Both the position numbers and the translations under genes were made by a program. The notes beneath the pieces are model-generated. The model was not told the origin of the DNA. It made no database searches and saw nothing but the letters and a program-made list of their open reading frames with translations. This document shows positions 2,537 to 18,477 of a DNA stretch of 64,000 nucleotides, piece after piece; the stretch's first letter is position 1; every line of letters begins with the position of its first letter. The stretch is from Adineta vaga (lineage: Eukaryota; Animalia; Rotifera). The stretch spans positions 7,068,001-7,132,000 of the forward strand of contig CP075492.1 in the NCBI GenBank assembly GCA_021613535.1, read 5' to 3'.

Positions 2537-4041
2537 TCATCTGACTTGATATGCTACAATTGATGCATGATCTAATTTGCCAGGAATTTTACCAACTTTA
2601 TTTCGCATTTTTAATTCAAATTTACTACGATCGGAACCTTCAGTTTCTTCATTCTCACGAACACCTTGTTCTATCGTTTGTCTTAATTCATCTGTTAATC
2701 GAAGTACATATTTCATCAAACGATTACATAGTTCTCGAGCATTCATTTGTTCTCCATTACTAGCAATCGATAGTTGCATTTGATTCAGACTAGATAAATG
2801 TCTTTCGTACGCAGTCATTAACACAGGTGGTGTTGTCGATATTGTATTACTTGATTTTCGAGCAAGCAATGGAGTTTTAACACTCGCTGCAATACCACTT
2901 ACACATGGATCGAAATTATCACTAATTCCGTCAGTTGTTAAAAATACAAAATCACCCTGATCGACTTCCATTAATGAATATGTTAAATTGGCTAGATCAG
3001 CTTTTTCATCCATTGTCGTTCCCAACGCACCACCTGGTGAACGCATATCACGTTCATTATTTAGATCACGAGATCCTAGAAGAATACTACAATAAAATAT
3101 CAAGAAAAAAAGAAAAGATCAAAATAACCCTGAGTTAATTCGAAGACAGCTCTTTGTTTTCGACTATATACATATGCATTCGAATCACCAACAATTGCGG
3201 AACATACTAACCAACAACGATTCGATGGACATATGATACTCATTGTTAATGTTGTTAACGAACCTTCACTTTTGAAAATTAATTGTTGAGCTGCTTCAAT
3301 TGCTGCTCGAATTCGTTCAAAAACATCCTGTAAAGACAAACCTTTGTCATAACTTCAAACAAAACTAACTCTTACTCTTGTTGTAGATAACTTCTTGTCA
3401 AATAAATCTTGATTAAGACAAGTCATGGCACCATGTATTGCACATCGAGCAGCAAGTCGAGCTTTATATCCCCAATTCACACCATCAGCAATCATTAAAA
3501 TAGCATTATTTTCCTGAGCACATATTCCAAAACAATCAGCAATAGGTTCACCTTGAATGAAGATACATTATTTCATTACAAAGGAAAGCAAAATTCATTG
3601 TTTTACCATTCAATTCTCCCGTAAATGGATTACGATCATACAGTGATGTTGATAAACCACAAGCAAATTCATCATTAGGAATTTGCCAATCGTATTGTCC
3701 AGCAACTTTGATTGATTTATTTACTTTCAAAATTCCTTTTTCTATAGAAAATTTCATAGTCAAAGATTGATGATTGAAAAATAATTCGTTTACTTTGATG
3801 TCGAGCAATATCGACTAAACCAACATCTGGACCTGATTCACAAGCAATAGTATTTTTACTTAATGGTGAAATAATTTCTACAGGTAATTGTAAATAGTTG
3901 TCATTTGCATAGAGTTGATAACGTTGAAGACGATTCGATGGTGAGAAACTTAAATCAAACAATCTTCATTATAAATTTCAAATCAAAATCAACTTACAAT
4001 GAAGCAACTTTTTGCCAAATATAACGTCTTTCTGTAGTCAT
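2537..4041 (-). CDS. PP2C-like domain protein (Drosophila CG9801-like), multi-exon
   Basis: Spliced motifs [53 protein letters not shown]; ATG at 4041. Confidence 0.85.
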
Positions 4042-4114
4042 CTAGAAAGGAGAAAAGAAGCTATCACAAGTGATAAACGAATAACAGTAGTGTAACAAAA
4101 GACAAAAGACAATT

Positions 4115-4513
4115 TTATTTTGTTTCTGTTAAAATCGCTGGTAAAGTACATGAAATTGTAATTGTCGATACCCAACGTGTATCACTCATTGGTTCCAAAT
4201 CATCTAATAAAGGCATTAAATGATCAGTAACTTCGATACTTGCTATTGATGTCTGTAATTGACAATTCGTTTTCAACTGAAATTGTAATGCCAAATTAAT
4301 TGTTCGTTGTAAAGCTGAACCCATACCATAGATTGTTATTTCTCGATAATTTCCATTCGATGATATTAATTTCATACAACGTTCTAATTGTGCTTTGAAA
4401 TTTGTTTTACGTGTAACGTAAATATCATTTGGACGTTTTGAAAATTGTTTATTATTTAAACGTTTAAATATTGAATATTCTTCAGGATCACGATGAAATT
4501 TTTCTTCACTCAT
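4115..4513 (-). CDS. POP7: RNase P/MRP subunit Rpp20 (Alba-like), intronless
   Basis: RPNDIYVTRKTNFKAQLERC...EITIYGMGSALQRTINLALQ matches the Rpp20 consensus. Confidence 0.9.
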   Translation of the reverse strand: MSEEKFHRDPEEYSIFKRLNNKQFSKRPNDIYVTRKTNFKAQLERCMKLISSNGNYREITIYGMGSALQRTINLALQFQLKTNCQLQTSIASIEVTDHLMPLLDDLEPMSDTRWVSTITISCTLPAILTETK

Positions 4514-4543
4514 CTAGAATAAAATCGAGAAAAATTAAGAAAC

Positions 4544-5121
4544 TTATTTTAAATTAGGTAATGATGAACCAAAATAAATTCTTAAATCATTTAATGTAGT
4601 ACGAACAAGTTTAGCACGAATAGTTTGCGAATTTAAACGTTTATAAGCTCTGAAAACAATGATATTCAATTGATGAAGAAGAATAAACATAGAAAATATT
4701 GCTATCTTACTCCCAACGATGGCAGCCACCCATTGCAAAAAAATAATTATTTTTCGAATCAGGTGCTTCATACCAAAGAATATCAATTGGTGGAACTTGA
4801 TTAGTTTCCATTGTCTATAGGAAGAGAAGTACGATAAATACTTTAATGAGGAAAAAGTATAATTATTTTTACTTGAATAGTTTCCATTAGTGATTTAACT
4901 TTGTTTTCATCGAGTATTGATGGCAATGGACGTGTTATGTCTTTCATCGGTATATTGTAGATTGTGTCGATTGATGCAGAATGAATTGATGATGATGACG
5001 ATGATGATGATGAAGAGGAACAAGCATTATTACTTAACGATGAACTTGTTTTCATTGTCAAGTAAATGGAAGGAAATAGAGTCGTAGAAAATAAATTTAA
5101 GTAAATAAATCTTGTCAACAT
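4544..5121 (-). CDS. SRXN1: Sulfiredoxin, 3 exons
   Basis: IPMKDITRPLPSILDENKVKSLMETIQ | VPPIDILW...YFFAMGGCHRWE | AYKRL...DLRIYFGSS; catalytic GCHR motif present. Alternative ATG at 5055. Confidence 0.92.
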
Positions 5122-6020: not shown

Positions 6021-7985
6021 TTAACGAAATTCTAATTGACCTTCGACGCCGTCAATTTCAGGAATAGTCATACCATTTTGAAGTAGAAACGTACGTTTTA
6101 TATAAGCATAAAGTAAATCAGAAATCAGAAATGTCTGAAAAGAAAACAGTTGAAAAATTTAGAACTCGATCGCTTTTTACATTAATATTTCTTACCTGAG
6201 CAACGTTGAAGACCATTGTCATTGCAAAGTAAAAATTAGCATTTGCACTTCCTGTATATATCCACAAGTACCATGTTATTGGTGCCATTAAAACAGCGAT
6301 CAATACCATACAAATAATTATTAAACTATGTCGAACATCTATACATGTATAAAACAAAAATCATTCATTTGAAATGACGAAATTTTCTTCTATTTACATC
6401 GAAAAAGAAAACTCCATATGGGTAGATAATTGAAATAGAATGTTGCATCACCATAAGCTGGATATGATTTAAATGTGCAAAAGATTGCACACAGAAGCCA
6501 AAAGAAGAATATTGGATCTTTTCTAGAATACGAAAAAAAACACCCCCAAATAATCAATTCTGCTTAAATCAGTTCACCATACCGTAATCGAATAGCAAAG
6601 GGAAATAGATAAAGTAAGAGTACATGCATTTGAAATGTCCAAACAAATAATGAACGAAAATGATCGAACATTTCGGTAAAAAAATACCAAAAGATTCCGA
6701 CATTTGGTGTATAATCTGGTACATGAAATCTATTAGAACAAACGAGTTAAAAAATCGTATAGAAAAGAAAATGACTTACATGAAACTATAGGTTGATTCA
6801 AGAAATGACCATGATTGATGATTAAGAAAGAAATTAAGAAAAAGTACACTAGTACTAACAATTGCAAAAAGAATAATCACAAAGAATGCACGAATAATTG
6901 AATGATTATTCTAAAAGAATAATAAAACATTAAATTCTTTCATAGTTAACAAAATTTACAGATTTAGTTTTGGAAAATTGCAATAAAGCTGGTACAATTA
7001 AAACAATAGGATAGAATGAAATTGAACTAGTTACAGCTAATATTATTATAAATGGTACCAATTGATCTAAAGATTCAATTCTTTGGAAATCTTTCATAAG
7101 AATAAAAGAAAATCTTACATGTGGTAAAGAAATAAAATGTCATAGTCAATAATAGATTATGAAAAACTAAACTTGATTTAGCTAGACATGTACCAATACC
7201 CAAGGGATTTATCATTGTACTATTAAAATAAGTATAAAACAATTGATTGAAGAAGAAAATTAGAAAGACTATCATACCATAACAGAACAGCTAATGCACT
7301 TTTTTCAACATTCTCTTTTGTTAACCATAAGGATTTGCTGTCTTCTTTATACGTTGCCTTTTCTTTGACTTCTTGTGCAAACTATGAACAAGAGAATTAG
7401 TTTTTTCTAATTCAAACGATGACATACAGTACTTACAAGTTCTGTTAAAATTCGACGTGCTATTTTGTAGGTGAATAAACCAATTAGAAGATCAGCTATC
7501 TAAATAATACAAATGAAATATGTATTGTGAACTTATAAATAAATGAGCACTATTTACAATAAATAAACCTTCGATATGTCCTTGTGTTAATGCATGTAGT
7601 TTGGAATAGAAGAAAAGTGATAGCGGTGTCTAAATAGAAGAAGAAATATACGGTTAAACTTTAATCGTGAACAATTGAAAATGAATTAGAAAAGAATTTC
7701 AATAGGAAAACTGTCTTTACATACTTCATGTACAACAGAACCAACAAATGGTGAAACGTTTAGTTTCTGTAAGTAAATTCCTTCAATAACTATAGAAAAA
7801 CAACAACAACAACATCATCAAACTTTTATTGCTATTCATCAATATTTACCTCTTTTCCATGAAGTCAATGGTGTTACAAATTCACCACTATCTTCAAAAT
7901 AATTCCTGATTCTTGTTTGAAAGAAAAGAAATACTCGTAACACAAGACCTATACCAATATAGGCTGTTTCAATTCTATCTAACAT
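6021..7985 (-). CDS. PIGU: GPI transamidase subunit PIG-U, multi-exon
   Basis: N-terminus EFVTPLTSWKR|VIEGIYL...SPFVGSVVHE; internal PNVGIFWYFFTEMF and FKSYPAYGD; C-terminus WYLWIYTGSANANFYFAMT. Confidence 0.92.
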
Positions 7986-8179
7986 CTTGAAAAAAAATTT
8001 ACAATAAAATATTTTGTTTTATTTTTAGAATAAAGAAGATTTAACGAATACATAAAGAAAACTCAGATACATAATTATTTGAGATTTAGTTTAATAAAAA
8101 CACACGCACATACACATACACATACACATAAAGAAACTGTTTAGATGAAAATGACTAGAGAGTCCCAGATACACATGAA

Positions 8180-11100
8180 TCATGGCTGGAATGCATCATA
8201 ACAGATAGAACCGGTTGTTACTTAGACGAAAAATAGAAATAATTATAAGAAAACATGATTTTCTGAAGAATCATCACGAGATGTTTGTCGTGATGACCTG
8301 CTGCTCTACTTAATTCTTCAATAATTGGATTAGAAACTATTGAAGACTTTCGTGGTGAACGAACAGACGTTTTTGCATTGTCATTTGCATCATCTTTATT
8401 TTCTTCATTCATACTTTTTTGTACTATATTTTGTCGTTTTCCTTTTCGACGATTTTTTATACCCATTTCTTTATCCATCATATCCTCTAATGTTCCATGA
8501 TCAACAACAGTTGATATCGGTGCAATTGATATATCACGTACAGCACGAAATTCTCCGCAATTATTCAGATGTTCGTTTTCTAAACGAAAATAATTCCAAA
8601 TAAAACGACGAAAAATCTCGATTAAACCAAAGATAAAACCAATAACATCTGCATATTCAGCTGAACGTGTTCGAAATTGCATAAAAACATTTATAATCCA
8701 TATATAACGAAAGAGAATATTCTCTACAATAGCCGCATAATAGTAAAATCTTGATGGATAAACAATTTGATCACGTAGAAATTTATTTTCACCTGCATTT
8801 TTATCAAAAAATCCCCAATCCATTTTTAAATCCCAAATAACTTTATATGTTGCACCAATAAATGATGCAATAATCCAAATATATAAAAATGGATTTGATG
8901 TTGGATTATCTAGATAATGAATCGCTGTTGCACGACGTGCTGCATTTGTACCAGTAACAAAAAATCCACTAGCATATTTACCAGCATTGACTAAATGTGG
9001 AAATTTTTGTTTCGTATCTCGATAACGTCTTAAACATTGTGCAAAACGAAACCATGATGGTAATACCATGAGAGCTGTTTGCAAAAGAACTTGAGGCCAA
9101 CCGTGACAAAGTATTCCACGTGTTGGAGATGAAGAATAGACTGGCCACCATCCAACATCATAAATATAGAAACAAAAGAAATATTCAATATCGAAAAAGA
9201 TCAATTCAAGTGATGTTAATTGATCACCAAGCCAAAAGTCAGCGAAACCAATACGATAAAATGGTGCGCAAATAACTCGACCTAAAGTTTTGAGAAACCA
9301 AAATCGAGCATGATGATAAAGCGTATGTGTTGGATTGAATAGAAATAAAAGAATTAATGTAACAAAACCAAGTGGTTGTATAAATGGATGAAAATCAAAA
9401 TAAGATGATAAAATAAATCCTGTAAAACTTAAAAACCATAAGACAAAAAGAAAAGTACCAAATTCAAGAAATTGTTGATAAGTTAAATGATTTCGTGGAT
9501 CAATTTCAAATATAAGAACATGATTGACGCCTGATGATGACCATCCGTAAACATTTATACCGACTAGAACAATATGAAGGACAACAAGAAAGGTTGACCG
9601 ATAGAGAAATAGTGCTTGTCGCCAAGCAAGTGGCTTCGTTGATTGACTATCATGAAGACTAGCTCCAAGAGCAATAACAGCAGGAAGTAAAAGACAAATC
9701 ATTCCTAGAGAGAGAGAGGGAGAGAAGAAAATCGTAGTATTGCTAAAGAGAAGAAAGTCTTTTACATTCGTACCAACGAAAACTCCGACACGAAATGTAA
9801 CAGCAGGTGATTGTTTTTCTTCCAATGGTGGTACACGTAAACGTTTCATTGCACGAGCTCGATCGCCTGATTCTAATGTATCAGTATACAAAGTTTCACA
9901 ATCATTTATTAACTGTTCAACTCGTTTCGATGTATGAAAAGGAGCTGAATCAATATGTAACTTTCTAGAATCCAATGATCATTCTTTTTTTTTCAAATGG
10001 AAACTAAATAGAAGAAATCGTTTTCTTACCGCCATTCTTCACCGCGTGCCGTTTGAAATAATTTATCATGTTTTTTTAATATTTTACGAAAGCCTGTGAA
10101 ATTCAATGTTTGATAATTTTGTAATAAAACTAACATTAAATAAAATTCACTGAAAGCTAATTTTAAATCATTTCGTTTTCGATATTGAACACGTTGTGTT
10201 TGTTTTTCACGAGTTTTTTCTACTAGTCGTTCTGGTAATACACGTGTTAATGGTGCCATAACAGTATGATCTTCTGAACGACGTTTAATTGTAGATGATT
10301 TCGTTTCATCATGTTGGTCATTATTGACAGATGCTTCAGCACCCGATGCACCTGAACGATGAGATACATGACGACGAGCTTGTTCCATATGACCAACCTC
10401 ATTTTTCAATGTTTCCCATCGTCGTAATGCTCTATTAAAATCGAACGATTTATATAACGTTTGTTAAATCATCACTGGATTTAGTGTTTACTGGAAATAT
10501 ACTCAAATTTAGCAGCTGATAAACTCATCGTACAATTCATACAGTCAGCTGTAAAGTTATTTTCGTAGGATTAAACTTGACATTTATATTAACCTTACTA
10601 TTGAGAACAAATATCAGGTGGTTAACAAACTAAACAATCGATACTCAAATCAAAACATGGAAAGTACGAAACGACTACAAGAATAAGATATATCTACACA
10701 TAAGAATCAATCATTACTATGACTTTAATTTCGGATTGATATCGATAAAGATAGGAATCACTTTATAGACAATAATATCAAAGAGTGTGCTATAGTTTTT
10801 GATTCTCATACATAAACGGCAATTGAAAAATAAATTTGACTTTGCATATACCTTTAGGCAAATCTTATTATCATTTTTGGTGTTATAAAAGCCAAAAAGA
10901 AATCGATTTACTTACTCAGCAAGTTTTTCTGCAAAAAATGTATTGATTTTCGTTGCTTCTTTTTCACAATACTACATGACAAAAACGTAAAAAGGCAGAT
11001 ATTGATGGTTGATTTTGTAGATTTTTACCTGGAAAAAATGTTCATCAACACGGATGAAAAATTGCTCACGTAAAACATTATCACTATCATCAACAAAAGG

Positions 11101-11211
11101 TTGTGCTTTAGCAACGGCTTGTGCCAATAATTCTTTCATATCATCATAACGAATATATTGACTATTCCATTCGGGTGTAACATGTGCTGATAAATGTTCG
11201 GCAAATTTCAT
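8180..11211 (-). CDS. XPR1: SPX-EXS phosphate exporter XPR1, multi-exon
   Basis: SPX start [22 protein letters not shown]; [15 protein letters not shown]; EXS motifs [10 protein letters not shown] and [27 protein letters not shown]. The last exon (stop about 8180) is inferred. Confidence 0.95.
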
Positions 11212-11668
11212 CGTAACACTATTCTTTCAAGTAAATATCATTTAGAATGACTGTCTAGGGATAAAAAAAAAGAAACGAAATATCAATAAGTTGATTTGAA
11301 AGAGAAAAGGATTTATTTGCTTAACAAAGCTATTTCTTTCGTGTTCTGTTAAAGAAATGAATGATATTTATATACATATACATAGAATCAAGATAAATGA
11401 GTTGAGTCAAAAAAAAAGAAAGAAGAAAAAAAGAGAAATGCCGAGTACGAAAGAGAAAACGAAGAAAAATAAGAGTGTCTACGTAATAATCAACTTTTGT
11501 CTTTTACGTACAATAGAAAATTGCTCATGCAGAAAAATCTAAAACGTACCGAATGAATTTGATCTAAGTTGATATGATTAATGAGATAAATTAATATCTA
11601 GAAAAAAAACAATAACAAAAACAAAATGTTTGTTATATTTTTTGGAACAAGAATATTTCTTATTATTT

Positions 11669-13266
11669 TTATCGTCGCCAAAGTTTTAATACTTTATCTT
11701 TTCCACCACTAGCAACTTTTTGTCCATCAGGACTATAATCAACTGCATAGATTTCATCCGCATGACCGGGTAAATCGAAAAGAAGACAACGTTTTTCAAT
11801 ATTCCAAATTTTCAATGTACTATCAGCACTACCCGAAACAAGTAAACGAGAATCAGCTGACCAAGCTATTTGATAAACAGCTTGTACATGACCACGTAAT
11901 GTTGATAGAAAAGCACCAGTACGACTTGACCATAATTTAATCGATTTATCAAAACTAGCTGATGCTAATAGACGTGTATCTGGAGAAAATTTCACATCAT
12001 TGATTAATTGTTGATGACCTGTCATACGTGCTAAAGGTTTCTTATCCGTTTCAGGTTTCCAAAGATAAAGTGTAAAATCATCCGAACCAGATACTAATCG
12101 TTCACCACCATTAGTATCAAATAATTTATAAACTTTTTCATATCTTTCAAGTGCTAATGTTTGCAATGTTGTTTCATCAAGATCTTCATAATCATCGGAT
12201 GCACGTTCTTTCGATGGTTCATATGCACCCGTTCGTAAAACATAATCTGTTGATAATGCAAGTGTATTAACCCAATGTGCATGTCCTTCTAGTGTTCGAC
12301 AGAGAACACCATCTGTTGTACGCCAGACTTTGATTGTACGATCTTGTGATGCTGAATAGAGTAGATTTTGTCCACCCCATTTAATACATGTTACTGACGC
12401 TGTATGACCGCTGAGTGTAAGCATACATTTAAATAAATGTGTATCCCAAAGTTTAATTGTTGTATCTTTACTGCCCGATGCTAATAGACGACAACTACCA
12501 TTTAAATGTAATGGTTGCCAACTTAAAGAATTTATCCATTGACGATGACCAGATAATAATTTTGTACCTAGAAAATCGTAGTTAGTATTCAGATATCTAC
12601 GTGAAATCACAATCGAAAACTTCTATATGCCAAATAAATTGTCTCTTCTGGAAAGAAAAAAGAAAAAAAAAGATTCTATTTACCATGTTGTTTCCCTGTT
12701 GCACCAATCCATAAACCAATAAGTCCTTGTTTACATGATGATGCTACAATTTTCCCATTCGGTGCCCAACTTAAACATAATATCCAATGTTTATGTGCTT
12801 TACCATATTCATCAAATGGTGTTTGTGTATTCAAATCCCAAAATCGAACAGTCGTATCTCCACTACCGGATGCTAAAAGTCTTCCATTGGGACTAAATTG
12901 TAAAATGGTAATGGCTTCTAAATGTCCTTCAATTGTTGCCGTACATCGTTCAACTGGTATAACTTGAAATCGTGCTTTAGGAACACAAACAATATTTAAA
13001 GTTTTTTCAAACATTTGTTTATTTGTTTGTTCTTGAAAATATTTTTCTAATGATTCTTTTATTTCAATTTCATCAACATAAAATGAATAGGGAATGGCAT
13101 CATTGCTATCATTTGATGTCAATGCTTCTTGTGCTTGAGCAAGTCCATTAGCGACGCTATTCAATTGACGAAGATTGACCATTAAAGGTATTTCAACAGG
13201 TCCACCAAGTAAAGTTCCATTTTCAAGTTGAAACTGACTGAGAATTGCTTTATCTGATGATGACAT
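11669..13266 (-). CDS. NLE1: Notchless homolog (WD40 ribosome assembly factor, Rsa4), 2 exons
   Basis: N-terminal NLE domain (PYSFYVDEIEI), WD40 repeats, GHAHWVNTLALSTDYVLRTGA, ERLVSGSDDFTLYLW, ASGGKDKVLKLWR. Confidence 0.95.
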
Positions 13267-13354
13267 GATCACTTGATGAATAATTTTATACTTATATAAA
13301 ACAAAAAGAAAAGAATGATAAACAAAACTGAGGGTAAATTCGACTAAATTATCT

Positions 13355-13618
13355 CTATTTTAATTCTTTATTTCGTTTATTTTCTAAATAATTTTCAATA
13401 TCATTAATCATCAATTCTTTTTCACGTCGTTGCATTGCTTTTTTACCAAATAAAGAAAATAATAATCCACCAGTTATCCATAGAAGAGCATAGCGTGTAT
13501 TAGTATTTTTAATTATACGTTTAAATAATGTTGACCATGCTGTTTGAGTCGGCCTCTGTTGATGTGTTGTTTCCGGTTTATGTTGATTAATAATCGGTGA
13601 TGGATGAGTTCCTATCAT
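13355..13618 (-). CDS. Hypothetical 87-aa single-pass membrane protein
   Basis: Clean ATG-to-stop ORF with one hydrophobic segment (YALLWITGGLLFSLFG) and a charged tail; sits inside the gene run with an acceptor-like upstream sequence. Confidence 0.65.
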   Translation of the reverse strand: MIGTHPSPIINQHKPETTHQQRPTQTAWSTLFKRIIKNTNTRYALLWITGGLLFSLFGKKAMQRREKELMINDIENYLENKRNKELK

Positions 13619-13669
13619 CTTATCTATCTAGAAAAAAAAACCGAACATACGATTAAACAAAAGAACACA

Positions 13670-13997
13670 TCATTTCGTAGTTTGTAATTTAAGATCTAAA
13701 AACAAAATAGAATTTATTTTTTCGAATCAAAATCATTGATGTCTATCGTCAAAGTACATTGCTCAAAGTGACGAAAGACATCGAATTATGAAAAATACCT
13801 CGTTCAGCTTCTGCTTGTCGTCTTGCTTGAATTTCTTTTAATGCTTCTCGTCTTTCAATCGCTTCTTTCGCTTGTTGAAGACCAGGCTTGAATGTATAAA
13901 CACCAGCTATAACACCAATAACACAAGCAACTGTAAAATCAAACCATGACATTCGTTTTCGAAAGGCAATATTAGGAATACGAAATCTAAAAGCCAT
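13670..13997 (-). CDS. PIGBOS1-like mitochondrial outer membrane microprotein
   Basis: RMSWFDFTVACVIGVIAGVYTFKPGLQQ resembles human PIGBOS1 as recalled ([28 protein letters not shown]). A probable intron at 13696-13798 gives the C-terminus ...DLKLQTTK*; unspliced stop is at 13749. Confidence 0.7.
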
Positions 13998-14032
13998 TCT
14001 ATCTGAAATAAAACAAATTCACTTTTTTTGTA

Positions 14033-14983
14033 TTAAGATTTTGTTAAATGATAAACACGTTTGCCAGCTTTCAAACAAATATCATCAATAGGTATAATCA
14101 TTGAATTAGGTTGACATCGATATTGTTTAAAGACAGACTAAAAACAAAGAATTCATTTGTTCGTTCATAGTTATAAAACTTATCGAATAGAAAATGTGGT
14201 TTGTATTCGAAGAAAGGTATTATTTTATTCTACAGGTATTGTTTGGAAGTGTACTTACCTGACATTTCTCTTTCCAATCATGTGGTAGTTTTTCTTCTCG
14301 ATTTTTATGAGTTGAACATCCAAAACTGACATGAAAACATGGATTCTAAAACAAAACGATTGATCGAACGAGAAAAAAACAAGAAATTACTTCATAATAA
14401 CATGGATATCGATGTTCATTGAGTATTTTATCAATAATTTCTACTAATCGTGAAAACTGTCGATGTTGATCTAGAGTAAATACTAGAAACGATCTATAGC
14501 AAGAAAATCTATGTTAATTAAACACTCGAATATTTTTTACTTATACATACGTTGATCCATCTTCATTGTTTAATATCGTTACGTCTTCAACATGCGTAGA
14601 AAATCTATTCATTGATATAGCTAATTCATTTTGAATATTTTTTCGAATCGATTCAATATGATGAAAACGAACAGGAAATGTTTTGGATAAACTTATGTGT
14701 AATTCTCCCAAACGTTTCCAAATTTCCGTCTTCTCATTAAAAATATCGATGACATCATCAATCATTGTATCTATATACGATGAACAATCCACTAAAAAGA
14801 GTAAAAAATCGTCATTTTTTTTATTTTCATAATTCTATCAAAATGTTTACCAAATGCATAAATCGCTAAGGCCCAATTTCCTTCTTCATGAGCAAATAAT
14901 CTCACTCGATCATTTTGATTTTGTTCAGTTGATACACGTTCTTCATTTTCTGATTCCGAAGAACTATATAACACAAGACTCAT
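14033..14983 (-). CDS. USB1: U6 snRNA phosphodiesterase Usb1/Mpn1 (2H phosphoesterase), multi-exon
   Basis: MSLVLYSSSESE...RVRLFAHEEGNWA; two HxS motifs (LHISLS, FHVSFG); C-terminus ICLKAGKRVY. Confidence 0.9.
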
Positions 14984-15167
14984 TTCTTTGGAAGAAAAAT
15001 AAAAACTCCTATACTTTTTTCCTGAAGACAAAATCTTATTCGTTTGAAATTGTCCAATGAAAATCGTTGTTGTTGTCCTCCATTTTTATTTCGCAACCAA
15101 AGAGAGTAAAGAAGGAAGCAAGAAAAAAGCTAGAGCAGCTGATTACTTTTATTTTTTTTTCATTCAA
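14984..15167. promoter_or_regulatory. Probable bidirectional promoter between USB1 and CUL1
   Basis: Head-to-head start codons only 184 bp apart. Confidence 0.55.

Positions 15168-18477
<3,310 letters not shown>

Follow-up and report, generated by a model that had tools for sequence, protein, structure and literature searches.

Four genes lying head-to-tail on the minus strand of the bdelloid rotifer Adineta vaga (contig CP075492.1, positions 7,068,001 to 7,132,000, a stretch of 64,000 nucleotides (nt) referred to here as the window) form a real cluster that is conserved, has RNA support and resembles in its behaviour the spliced-leader operons of tunicates. The genes are USB1, a PIGBOS1-like gene, an open reading frame (ORF) of 87 amino acids (aa) encoding a microprotein, and Notchless (NLE1), and an XPR1-like gene is probably the fifth cistron. 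We consider it probable that the cluster is a spliced-leader-resolved operon in the style of tunicates. The distances from stop codon to ATG were exactly 35, 51 and 88 nt when recomputed by script, in agreement with the initial annotation of this DNA, the second distance applying when the PIGBOS1-like intron is used, which RNA showed to be removed. Distances of this size leave no room for a 3' untranslated region (UTR), a promoter and a 5'UTR, and the co-oriented genes are spaced too closely for independent promoters.

Transcription was followed in Logan contigs from four runs, each of a different study (X1, X5, X18 and X21), over the interval 10800-15500. These contigs are assemblies, which cannot show starts, ends or single molecules, in which depth cannot rank genes and from which rare branches are dropped. 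Nine GT..AG joints in the contigs coincided exactly with introns drawn by hand, showing that the contigs represent RNA. All four USB1 introns and the PIGBOS1-like intron were spliced out in the four runs and the 116-nt intron of NLE1 was likewise removed in RNA contigs. Single contigs from X1 (1261 nt) and X21 (1281 nt) extended from the 5' end of USB1 (14993) through the PIGBOS1-like gene and the whole 87-aa ORF, ending at 13334 and 13328, respectively, and contigs from X18 and X5 ended at 13328 and 13318. The 51-nt spacer was crossed by contigs in all four runs and the 35-nt spacer in X1 and X21. In X18, a contig of the PIGBOS1-like gene and the 87-aa ORF (depth 33) ended at 14000 and a contig on the USB1 side (depth 7.4) apparently ended within about 10 nt of 14011, which fits a branch near the first acceptor without proving one.

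Addition of a spliced leader to NLE1 was observed directly. The NLE1 contigs ended at 13292 (X1 and X18) and 13291 (X5), that is, in three studies, and the X1 contig carried nine extra nucleotides that read CTTACCAAG when reverse-complemented and equal the rotifer leader in its 3' part. This 9-mer was absent from the 64-kb window and together with the genomic AG it spells the leader 3' end CTTACCAAGAG. NLE1 is therefore leader-spliced at the AG at 13292-13291 with its exon starting at 13290, close to where a leader site had been anticipated (about 13290), leaving a 5'UTR of 13290-13267 and an acceptor 24 nt before the NLE1 ATG.

Trans-splicing with a spliced leader has been known in rotifers since 2005. 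A search of the genome (100.8 Mb in 6 contigs) with the published Rotifera leader consensus GGCTTATTACAACTTACCAAGAG (PMC3795323 Table 1) recovered 59 copies of the leader exon at two mismatches or fewer compared to none for a reversed-pattern control, and every copy then examined was followed by the donor gtaaata and by a small-RNA body that is conserved. These copies and donors, along with the leader fragment on NLE1 RNA, show that the organism performs spliced-leader trans-splicing. The leader RNA genes often formed head-to-head pairs with about 154 nt between them and also occurred in clusters (C1:2551160-2551336, C5:9884356-9925969 and elsewhere; L001-L010), and several copies had variant exons with an A replacing the C at exon position 9 or 12. 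No match to Rfam SL1 (RF00198) was found in the whole genome, a result that is uninformative alone as the control genomes gave none either. Rotifers are not known to have an SL2-type leader. The assignment of the cluster to the nematode operons in the initial annotation was not upheld, as the DNA is that of a bdelloid rotifer carrying the rotifer leader 59 times and the nearest named homologues are from Rotaria, with the SL1 comparison counting as a weak test.

The order cullin (divergent), USB1, PIGBOS1, microprotein, NLE1 and XPR1, together with the acceptors, was shared by five further bdelloid lineages, Rotaria among them (L019, L024, L028/L029, L030 and L031), and the linkage is thus conserved between species. 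The three successive gaps were 31, 60 and 41 nt in L019 (DRR314038), in which the divergent cullin, USB1, PIGBOS1, an 88-aa ORF, NLE1 and SPX were present, 83, 78 and 50 nt in L024 (SRR33465444), and 52, 46 and 36 nt in L030 (ERZ26165376). The Rotaria socialis locus (L028/L029) had gaps of 74, 97 and 93 nt followed by 387 nt to XPR1 with the mini-exon, and L031 (SRR27500695), which held the most divergent microprotein, had gaps of approximately 87, 76 and 86 nt. The gap between the microprotein gene and NLE1 was 36-93 nt in all bdelloids examined. A sixth, partial bdelloid contig kept all the acceptors within its span. The layout is more than chance, as these five lineages have the same gene order and orientation with gaps of 31-115 nt.

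In another bdelloid, a transcript contig that begins with an Illumina adapter (L021, SRR22100225) contained USB1 and PIGBOS1, both fully spliced and separated by 115 nt, and, after a further spacer of 77 nt, the ORF of the microprotein, and two more runs of that series (L022 and L023) held USB1 and PIGBOS1. In L017 (ERR1598041; 700-1215), which represents either a different bdelloid or a second genomic copy, USB1 and PIGBOS1 were lost and the microprotein, NLE1 and XPR1 genes were intact. This locus kept a decayed USB1 exon 1 (ATG to ATA), the upstream ATTGG box and the microprotein acceptor, the pattern expected of downstream genes that rely on the promoter upstream. The leader 3' sequence was sought in the related loci L021-L027 and L031-L033 and was not found. 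Contigs L024 and L032/L033 were considered as polycistronic RNA of the microprotein and NLE1 genes and rejected, as their retained introns identify them as genomic DNA.

A pyrimidine- or T-rich tract and an AG, mostly AG|ATA, preceded each downstream ATG in every species compared. The acceptor core TTTCAG|ATA before PIGBOS1 was kept in L019, L024, L028, L030 and L031, and the core TTTT(G/C)TAG|AT before the microprotein was kept in three loci, plus Rotaria and L030, the acceptors being the conserved elements within otherwise variable spacers. In A. vaga, the acceptor-like sequences that had been quoted at 14003 and 13628 are present and the 88-nt gap is pyrimidine-rich as described. In most species, canonical polyadenylation (polyA) hexamers were absent from the stretch that leads from the USB1 stop to the acceptor of PIGBOS1 and likewise from the one between the PIGBOS1 stop and the acceptor after it. 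The sole hexamer in the A. vaga 35-nt spacer region was AATACA at 14034 and there was none in the 51-nt spacer. The conserved C-terminal E-N-K codons of the 87-aa gene spell AATAAA, which is likely the polyA signal of the upstream unit.

As USB1 and the PIGBOS1-like gene are without their own 3'-end signal in most bdelloids, nested co-terminal mRNAs or a mature polycistronic mRNA are possible. Under this arrangement, nested mRNAs would share a 3' end near 13330, comprising an unspliced tricistronic form from which USB1 is translated, a leader-capped bicistronic form of the PIGBOS1-like and 87-aa genes and a leader-capped 87-aa form. The choice of trans-splicing at each acceptor would then set which protein is made, and an animal would have at least one mature mRNA of a truly polycistronic kind. 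We put both the nested mRNAs and this consequence forward tentatively and regard them as rather doubtful.

Several observations weigh against the operon. No listed contig from the four runs covers 13293-13317, so that no RNA contig links NLE1 to the three upstream genes, and the contigs that do join two genes are assemblies and no proof of a single molecule. The leader was not seen in the contigs at the PIGBOS1-like, 87-aa and XPR1-like acceptors, which does not amount to absence as rare branches are dropped. The depth of NLE1 relative to upstream contigs was about 7-fold in X1, about 1.2-fold in X18 and 12-20-fold in X21, which would fit a separate promoter, although contig depth cannot rank genes. 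The core of the proposal in the initial annotation, a trans-spliced polycistronic unit, is supported by the RNA across the first two spacers, the leader on NLE1 and the conserved acceptors.

An alternative reading has two adjacent units. The first, polycistronic and made up of USB1 with the PIGBOS1-like and 87-aa genes, would end at the polyA site near 13330, and the second, NLE1 (with the XPR1-like gene), would have its own promoter inside the upstream genes and lose its outron through leader trans-splicing. In C. elegans terms, this would be a hybrid operon. It would explain why 13293-13317 was unbridged in four runs whereas the other spacers were bridged, and why the depth ratio ranged from about 1.2 to more than 10 between studies. 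However, only about 26-43 nt lie between the upstream 3' ends and the NLE1 acceptor, so that the NLE1 promoter would have to lie in coding sequence. The gap before NLE1, which stays at 36-93 nt in the bdelloids examined, and a linkage that persists between Adineta and Rotaria as well as in L031 also argue against two units, and fast processing of the precursor would equally explain the missing bridge. We consider two units unlikely.

Independent, tightly packed and overlapping monocistronic genes with minimal promoters, with the contig continuity as an assembly effect of overlapping UTRs, could be proposed since the genome is compact and contigs that cover two genes do not demonstrate a single transcript. 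This is very improbable, as the leader on NLE1 indicates that its 5' end is made by trans-splicing and not by initiation, the acceptors are conserved within otherwise variable spacers, the tricistronic contig recurs in a second species (L021) and most species are without a canonical polyA hexamer in the first two spacers. That the small ORFs are not genes and 13997-13355 is the 3'UTR of USB1, as one contig spanning USB1 and both small ORFs might suggest, is hardly credible and effectively refuted by protein-level conservation of the 87-aa product, for which identity is as low as 46% and one C-terminal motif is invariant, and the PIGBOS1 match exceeded its Pfam cut-off (E 1.3e-12) with the PIGBOS1-like intron precisely spliced.

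For the favoured operon, the following sequence of events is proposed. RNA polymerase II would start at a short bidirectional CCAAT-box promoter at about 14990-15150 that is shared with the divergent cullin gene, and USB1, the PIGBOS1-like gene and the 87-aa gene would be transcribed as one RNA, as indicated by contig continuity with introns removed. This upstream unit would be cleaved and polyadenylated at about 13334-13318 after AATAAA, where the contigs end. Transcription would continue beyond the 87-aa polyA site to the NLE1 acceptor, and the downstream RNA would gain the 22-nt rotifer leader at the AG at 13292-13291 before NLE1, as observed in the X1 contig. After NLE1, the acceptor at 11598 would feed the XPR1-like gene via the 48-nt mini-exon, for which continuity and the cis-splice were seen, and leader addition may occur there as well. 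The PIGBOS1-like (14003) and 87-aa (13628) genes would presumably be leader-spliced at their conserved acceptors.

Spliced-leader-resolved operons have been established in nematodes, tunicates, flatworms and chaetognaths (PMC7986045; PMC12460157). In tunicates, the median intercistronic distance is 1 bp in Ciona, and distances of 60 bp or less were used to define operons in Oikopleura (PMC7986045). As in Ciona intestinalis and Oikopleura dioica, where one leader type serves monocistronic and operonic genes and intercistronic distances are very short, the first gene here need not be trans-spliced and the genes are of the housekeeping kind. Tunicates differ in belonging to another phylum with an unrelated leader sequence and, unlike in tunicates, the junction of the 87-aa gene with NLE1 has a real region of 26-43 nt from the polyA site to the acceptor. 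Intercistronic regions that are tiny or absent and the lack of any sign of an operon-specific leader, for which no aimed test was made, suggest a likeness to the operons of tunicates and to the SL1-type operons of C. elegans more than to nematode operons of the SL2 type.

In the C. elegans SL1-type operons the polyA site reportedly adjoins the trans-splice site (Williams et al. 1999). These operons, which are mentioned in PMC7986045, are similar in that almost no space separates USB1 from the PIGBOS1-like gene (35 nt, with the acceptor 30 nt after the stop) and the downstream gene uses the general leader, and dissimilar in that the host here is not a nematode and SL1 had no match in the weak Rfam test. 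The SL2-type operons of C. elegans share co-oriented housekeeping genes, a single promoter (putative in this cluster) and polyA formation followed by downstream trans-splicing, as at the NLE1 junction. In contrast to SL2-type operons, no specialised SL2-like leader is known, nor was one seen within a leader fragment of only 9 nt, and the spacers fell below the roughly 100 nt that C. elegans typically has.

Chaetognaths, which are related to rotifers within the Gnathifera, have operons (Paraspadella gotoi; PMC12460157) with different leaders. Rotifers are counted among the trans-splicing and operonic lineages in PMC12460157, without rotifer operon data, and a comparative table gives rotifer operons as 'ND' (PMC2481426). 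Full-text literature searches, with most subscription journals outside their coverage, found no description of a rotifer operon. The operon is likely new for the phylum Rotifera, in which only trans-splicing has been documented so far.

The locus provides a concrete case, with RNA support in A. vaga, a mapped leader acceptor and conservation from Adineta-like contigs to Rotaria. If operons were general in rotifers, gene annotations and expression analyses would need to become operon-aware and Gnathifera (rotifers and chaetognaths) would be a second protostome clade for operon origins. There would in that case also be a mechanistic explanation of why a lineage-restricted microprotein has long stayed linked to PIGBOS1 and NLE1.

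The features of the cluster are listed in Table 1. The identities of USB1, the PIGBOS1-like gene and Notchless given in the initial annotation held in Pfam scans, which were run exon by exon and not on joined spliced proteins. Exons 1 to 3 of USB1 matched HVSL (PF09749), exon 2 alone scoring 35.4 bits versus a cut-off of 26.8, with exons 1 and 3 matching neighbouring portions of the profile. The USB1 translation contains two H-x-S motifs (HISLS and FHVSF), which together with the Pfam match place it among the HVSL 2H phosphodiesterases, a family characterised by two H-x-S/T motifs. Exon 1 of the PIGBOS1-like gene matched PF23670 with 48.0 bits, above the gathering threshold of 27, making the product a member of that family, and it had 37 homologues including Rotaria proteins, the nearest named ones being from Rotaria species. 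A PIGBOS1 intron with an insertion of about 500 nt, GC-rich and apparently with long inverted repeats, was present in an Adineta-like metagenome contig (L025:1810-2400, with L026 and L027), which suggests an element resembling a miniature inverted-repeat transposable element. NLE1 matched the NLE domain (PF08154) and WD40 repeats, and no second copy (ohnologue) was found in the whole genome, making it single-copy.

Table 1. Coordinates of the cluster, its spacers and its flanks (positions in the window; snRNA, small nuclear RNA)
Feature	Positions	Strand	Details
Region between the USB1 ATG and the cullin ATG (15168), 184 nt	14984..15167		Putative bidirectional promoter
USB1 (U6 snRNA phosphodiesterase, HVSL family)	14033..14983	minus	Pfam on exons, introns spliced in RNA; ATG at 14983, five exons, stop TAA 14035-14033
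USB1 exons	14983-14851, 14791-14551, 14493-14391, 14345-14259, 14137-14033	minus	
35-nt spacer, USB1/PIGBOS1-like	13998..14032	minus	ttttatttcAG, AG at 14004-14003, 5 nt before ATG
PIGBOS1-like microprotein, 74 aa	13670..13997	minus	Exons 13997-13799, 13695-13670; ATG 13997, intron 13798-13696, stop TGA 13672-13670
51-nt spacer, PIGBOS1-like/87-aa	13619..13669	minus	Acceptor-like tttttttttctAG, AG at 13629-13628, 9 nt before ATG
87-aa ORF, single-pass membrane microprotein	13355..13618	minus	ATG 13618, stop 13357-13355
3'-end region of the upstream unit	13318..13381	minus	AATAAA at 13381 and 13372, ATTAAA at 13364
88-nt spacer, 87-aa/NLE1	13267..13354	minus	Pyrimidine-rich; ttttatataAG, AG at 13292-13291
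Notchless/NLE1 (ribosome biogenesis WD40 protein)	11669..13266	minus	ATG 13266; exons 13266-12684, 12567-11669
NLE1/XPR1 spacer	11550..11668	minus	Acceptor ttttttttctAG, AG at 11599-11598, then non-coding mini-exon 11597-11550
XPR1-like (SPX-EXS) gene start	10972..11254	minus	Exon 2 from 11254, ATG 11211; gene runs to ~8220

The 87-aa product had no match in the Pfam scan and a BLASTP comparison with the PIGBOS1-like protein gave no similarity, so that the two are not detectable paralogues. A word search returned 2 relatives and a profile search of 1.8 billion proteins returned 12 cluster representatives, tying the protein to no known family. An exact look-up in public assemblies returned none, the source genome possibly being outside the searched set, and protein atlas scores of at most 0.81 gave no usable lead. 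The protein was conserved over seven aligned bdelloid sequences, and in every genomic copy examined the microprotein belonged to the same cluster, between PIGBOS1 and NLE1. On the basis of these searches, the microprotein appears restricted to a narrow lineage.

The 184-nt region upstream of USB1, which does lie between the USB1 and cullin start codons as initially described, contains an ATTGG (inverted CCAAT) box at 15058-15054, and the ATTGG/CCAAT block aligned in five bdelloid loci. The USB1 contigs ended at 14985-14993 and the cullin contigs started at 15152-15172. No AG acceptor was found ahead of the cullin ATG, and the 5' end of this gene is therefore probably a true transcription start. 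That one promoter within 14984-15167 drives all the genes is something we infer, because the RNA contigs do not connect the 87-aa gene with NLE1. Indirect support for it comes from the conserved ATTGG/CCAAT block ahead of USB1, which is retained even in the L017 copy despite its loss of USB1. The divergent cullin gene, on the plus strand with its ATG at 15168, has a 53-nt intron (15296-15348) that was spliced in RNA.

The initial annotation ended the unit at NLE1, which is probably too early, as the XPR1-like gene follows via a conserved acceptor and shares contigs with NLE1. Contigs from X1 and X21 ran from NLE1 past its stop (11669) to 11550 and were spliced to 11254, 43 nt before the XPR1-like ATG. 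The acceptor, a strong one, is placed 71 nt beyond the stop of NLE1 and is followed by the 48-nt mini-exon and a 295-nt intron in the 5'UTR, and this acceptor, mini-exon and donor were kept in L017, L019 and L028. In L031, the XPR1 5'UTR intron was absent and the ATG was 87 nt after the NLE1 stop. The Pfam families SPX and EXS matched the orthologous XPR1 genes in other bdelloid loci.

A 255-nt loose end at 13393, present in long contigs of two runs, was considered as chimeric RNA with a coiled-coil gene 1.95 Mb away (C3:9018199-9018228, L020), as which it continues. The shared sequence was only about 18 nt, and the match was therefore judged spurious. Further downstream of the cluster, in the interval 7985-8243 of the minus strand, an AATAAA is located near 8026 (some 235 nt past the stop of the XPR1-like gene), and a PIG-U-like gene has its ATG (7985) directly after tttttttttcAAG. 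The run of genes on the same strand extends to a second operon candidate, B, at 2537-5121, and the co-oriented block may comprise about ten genes.

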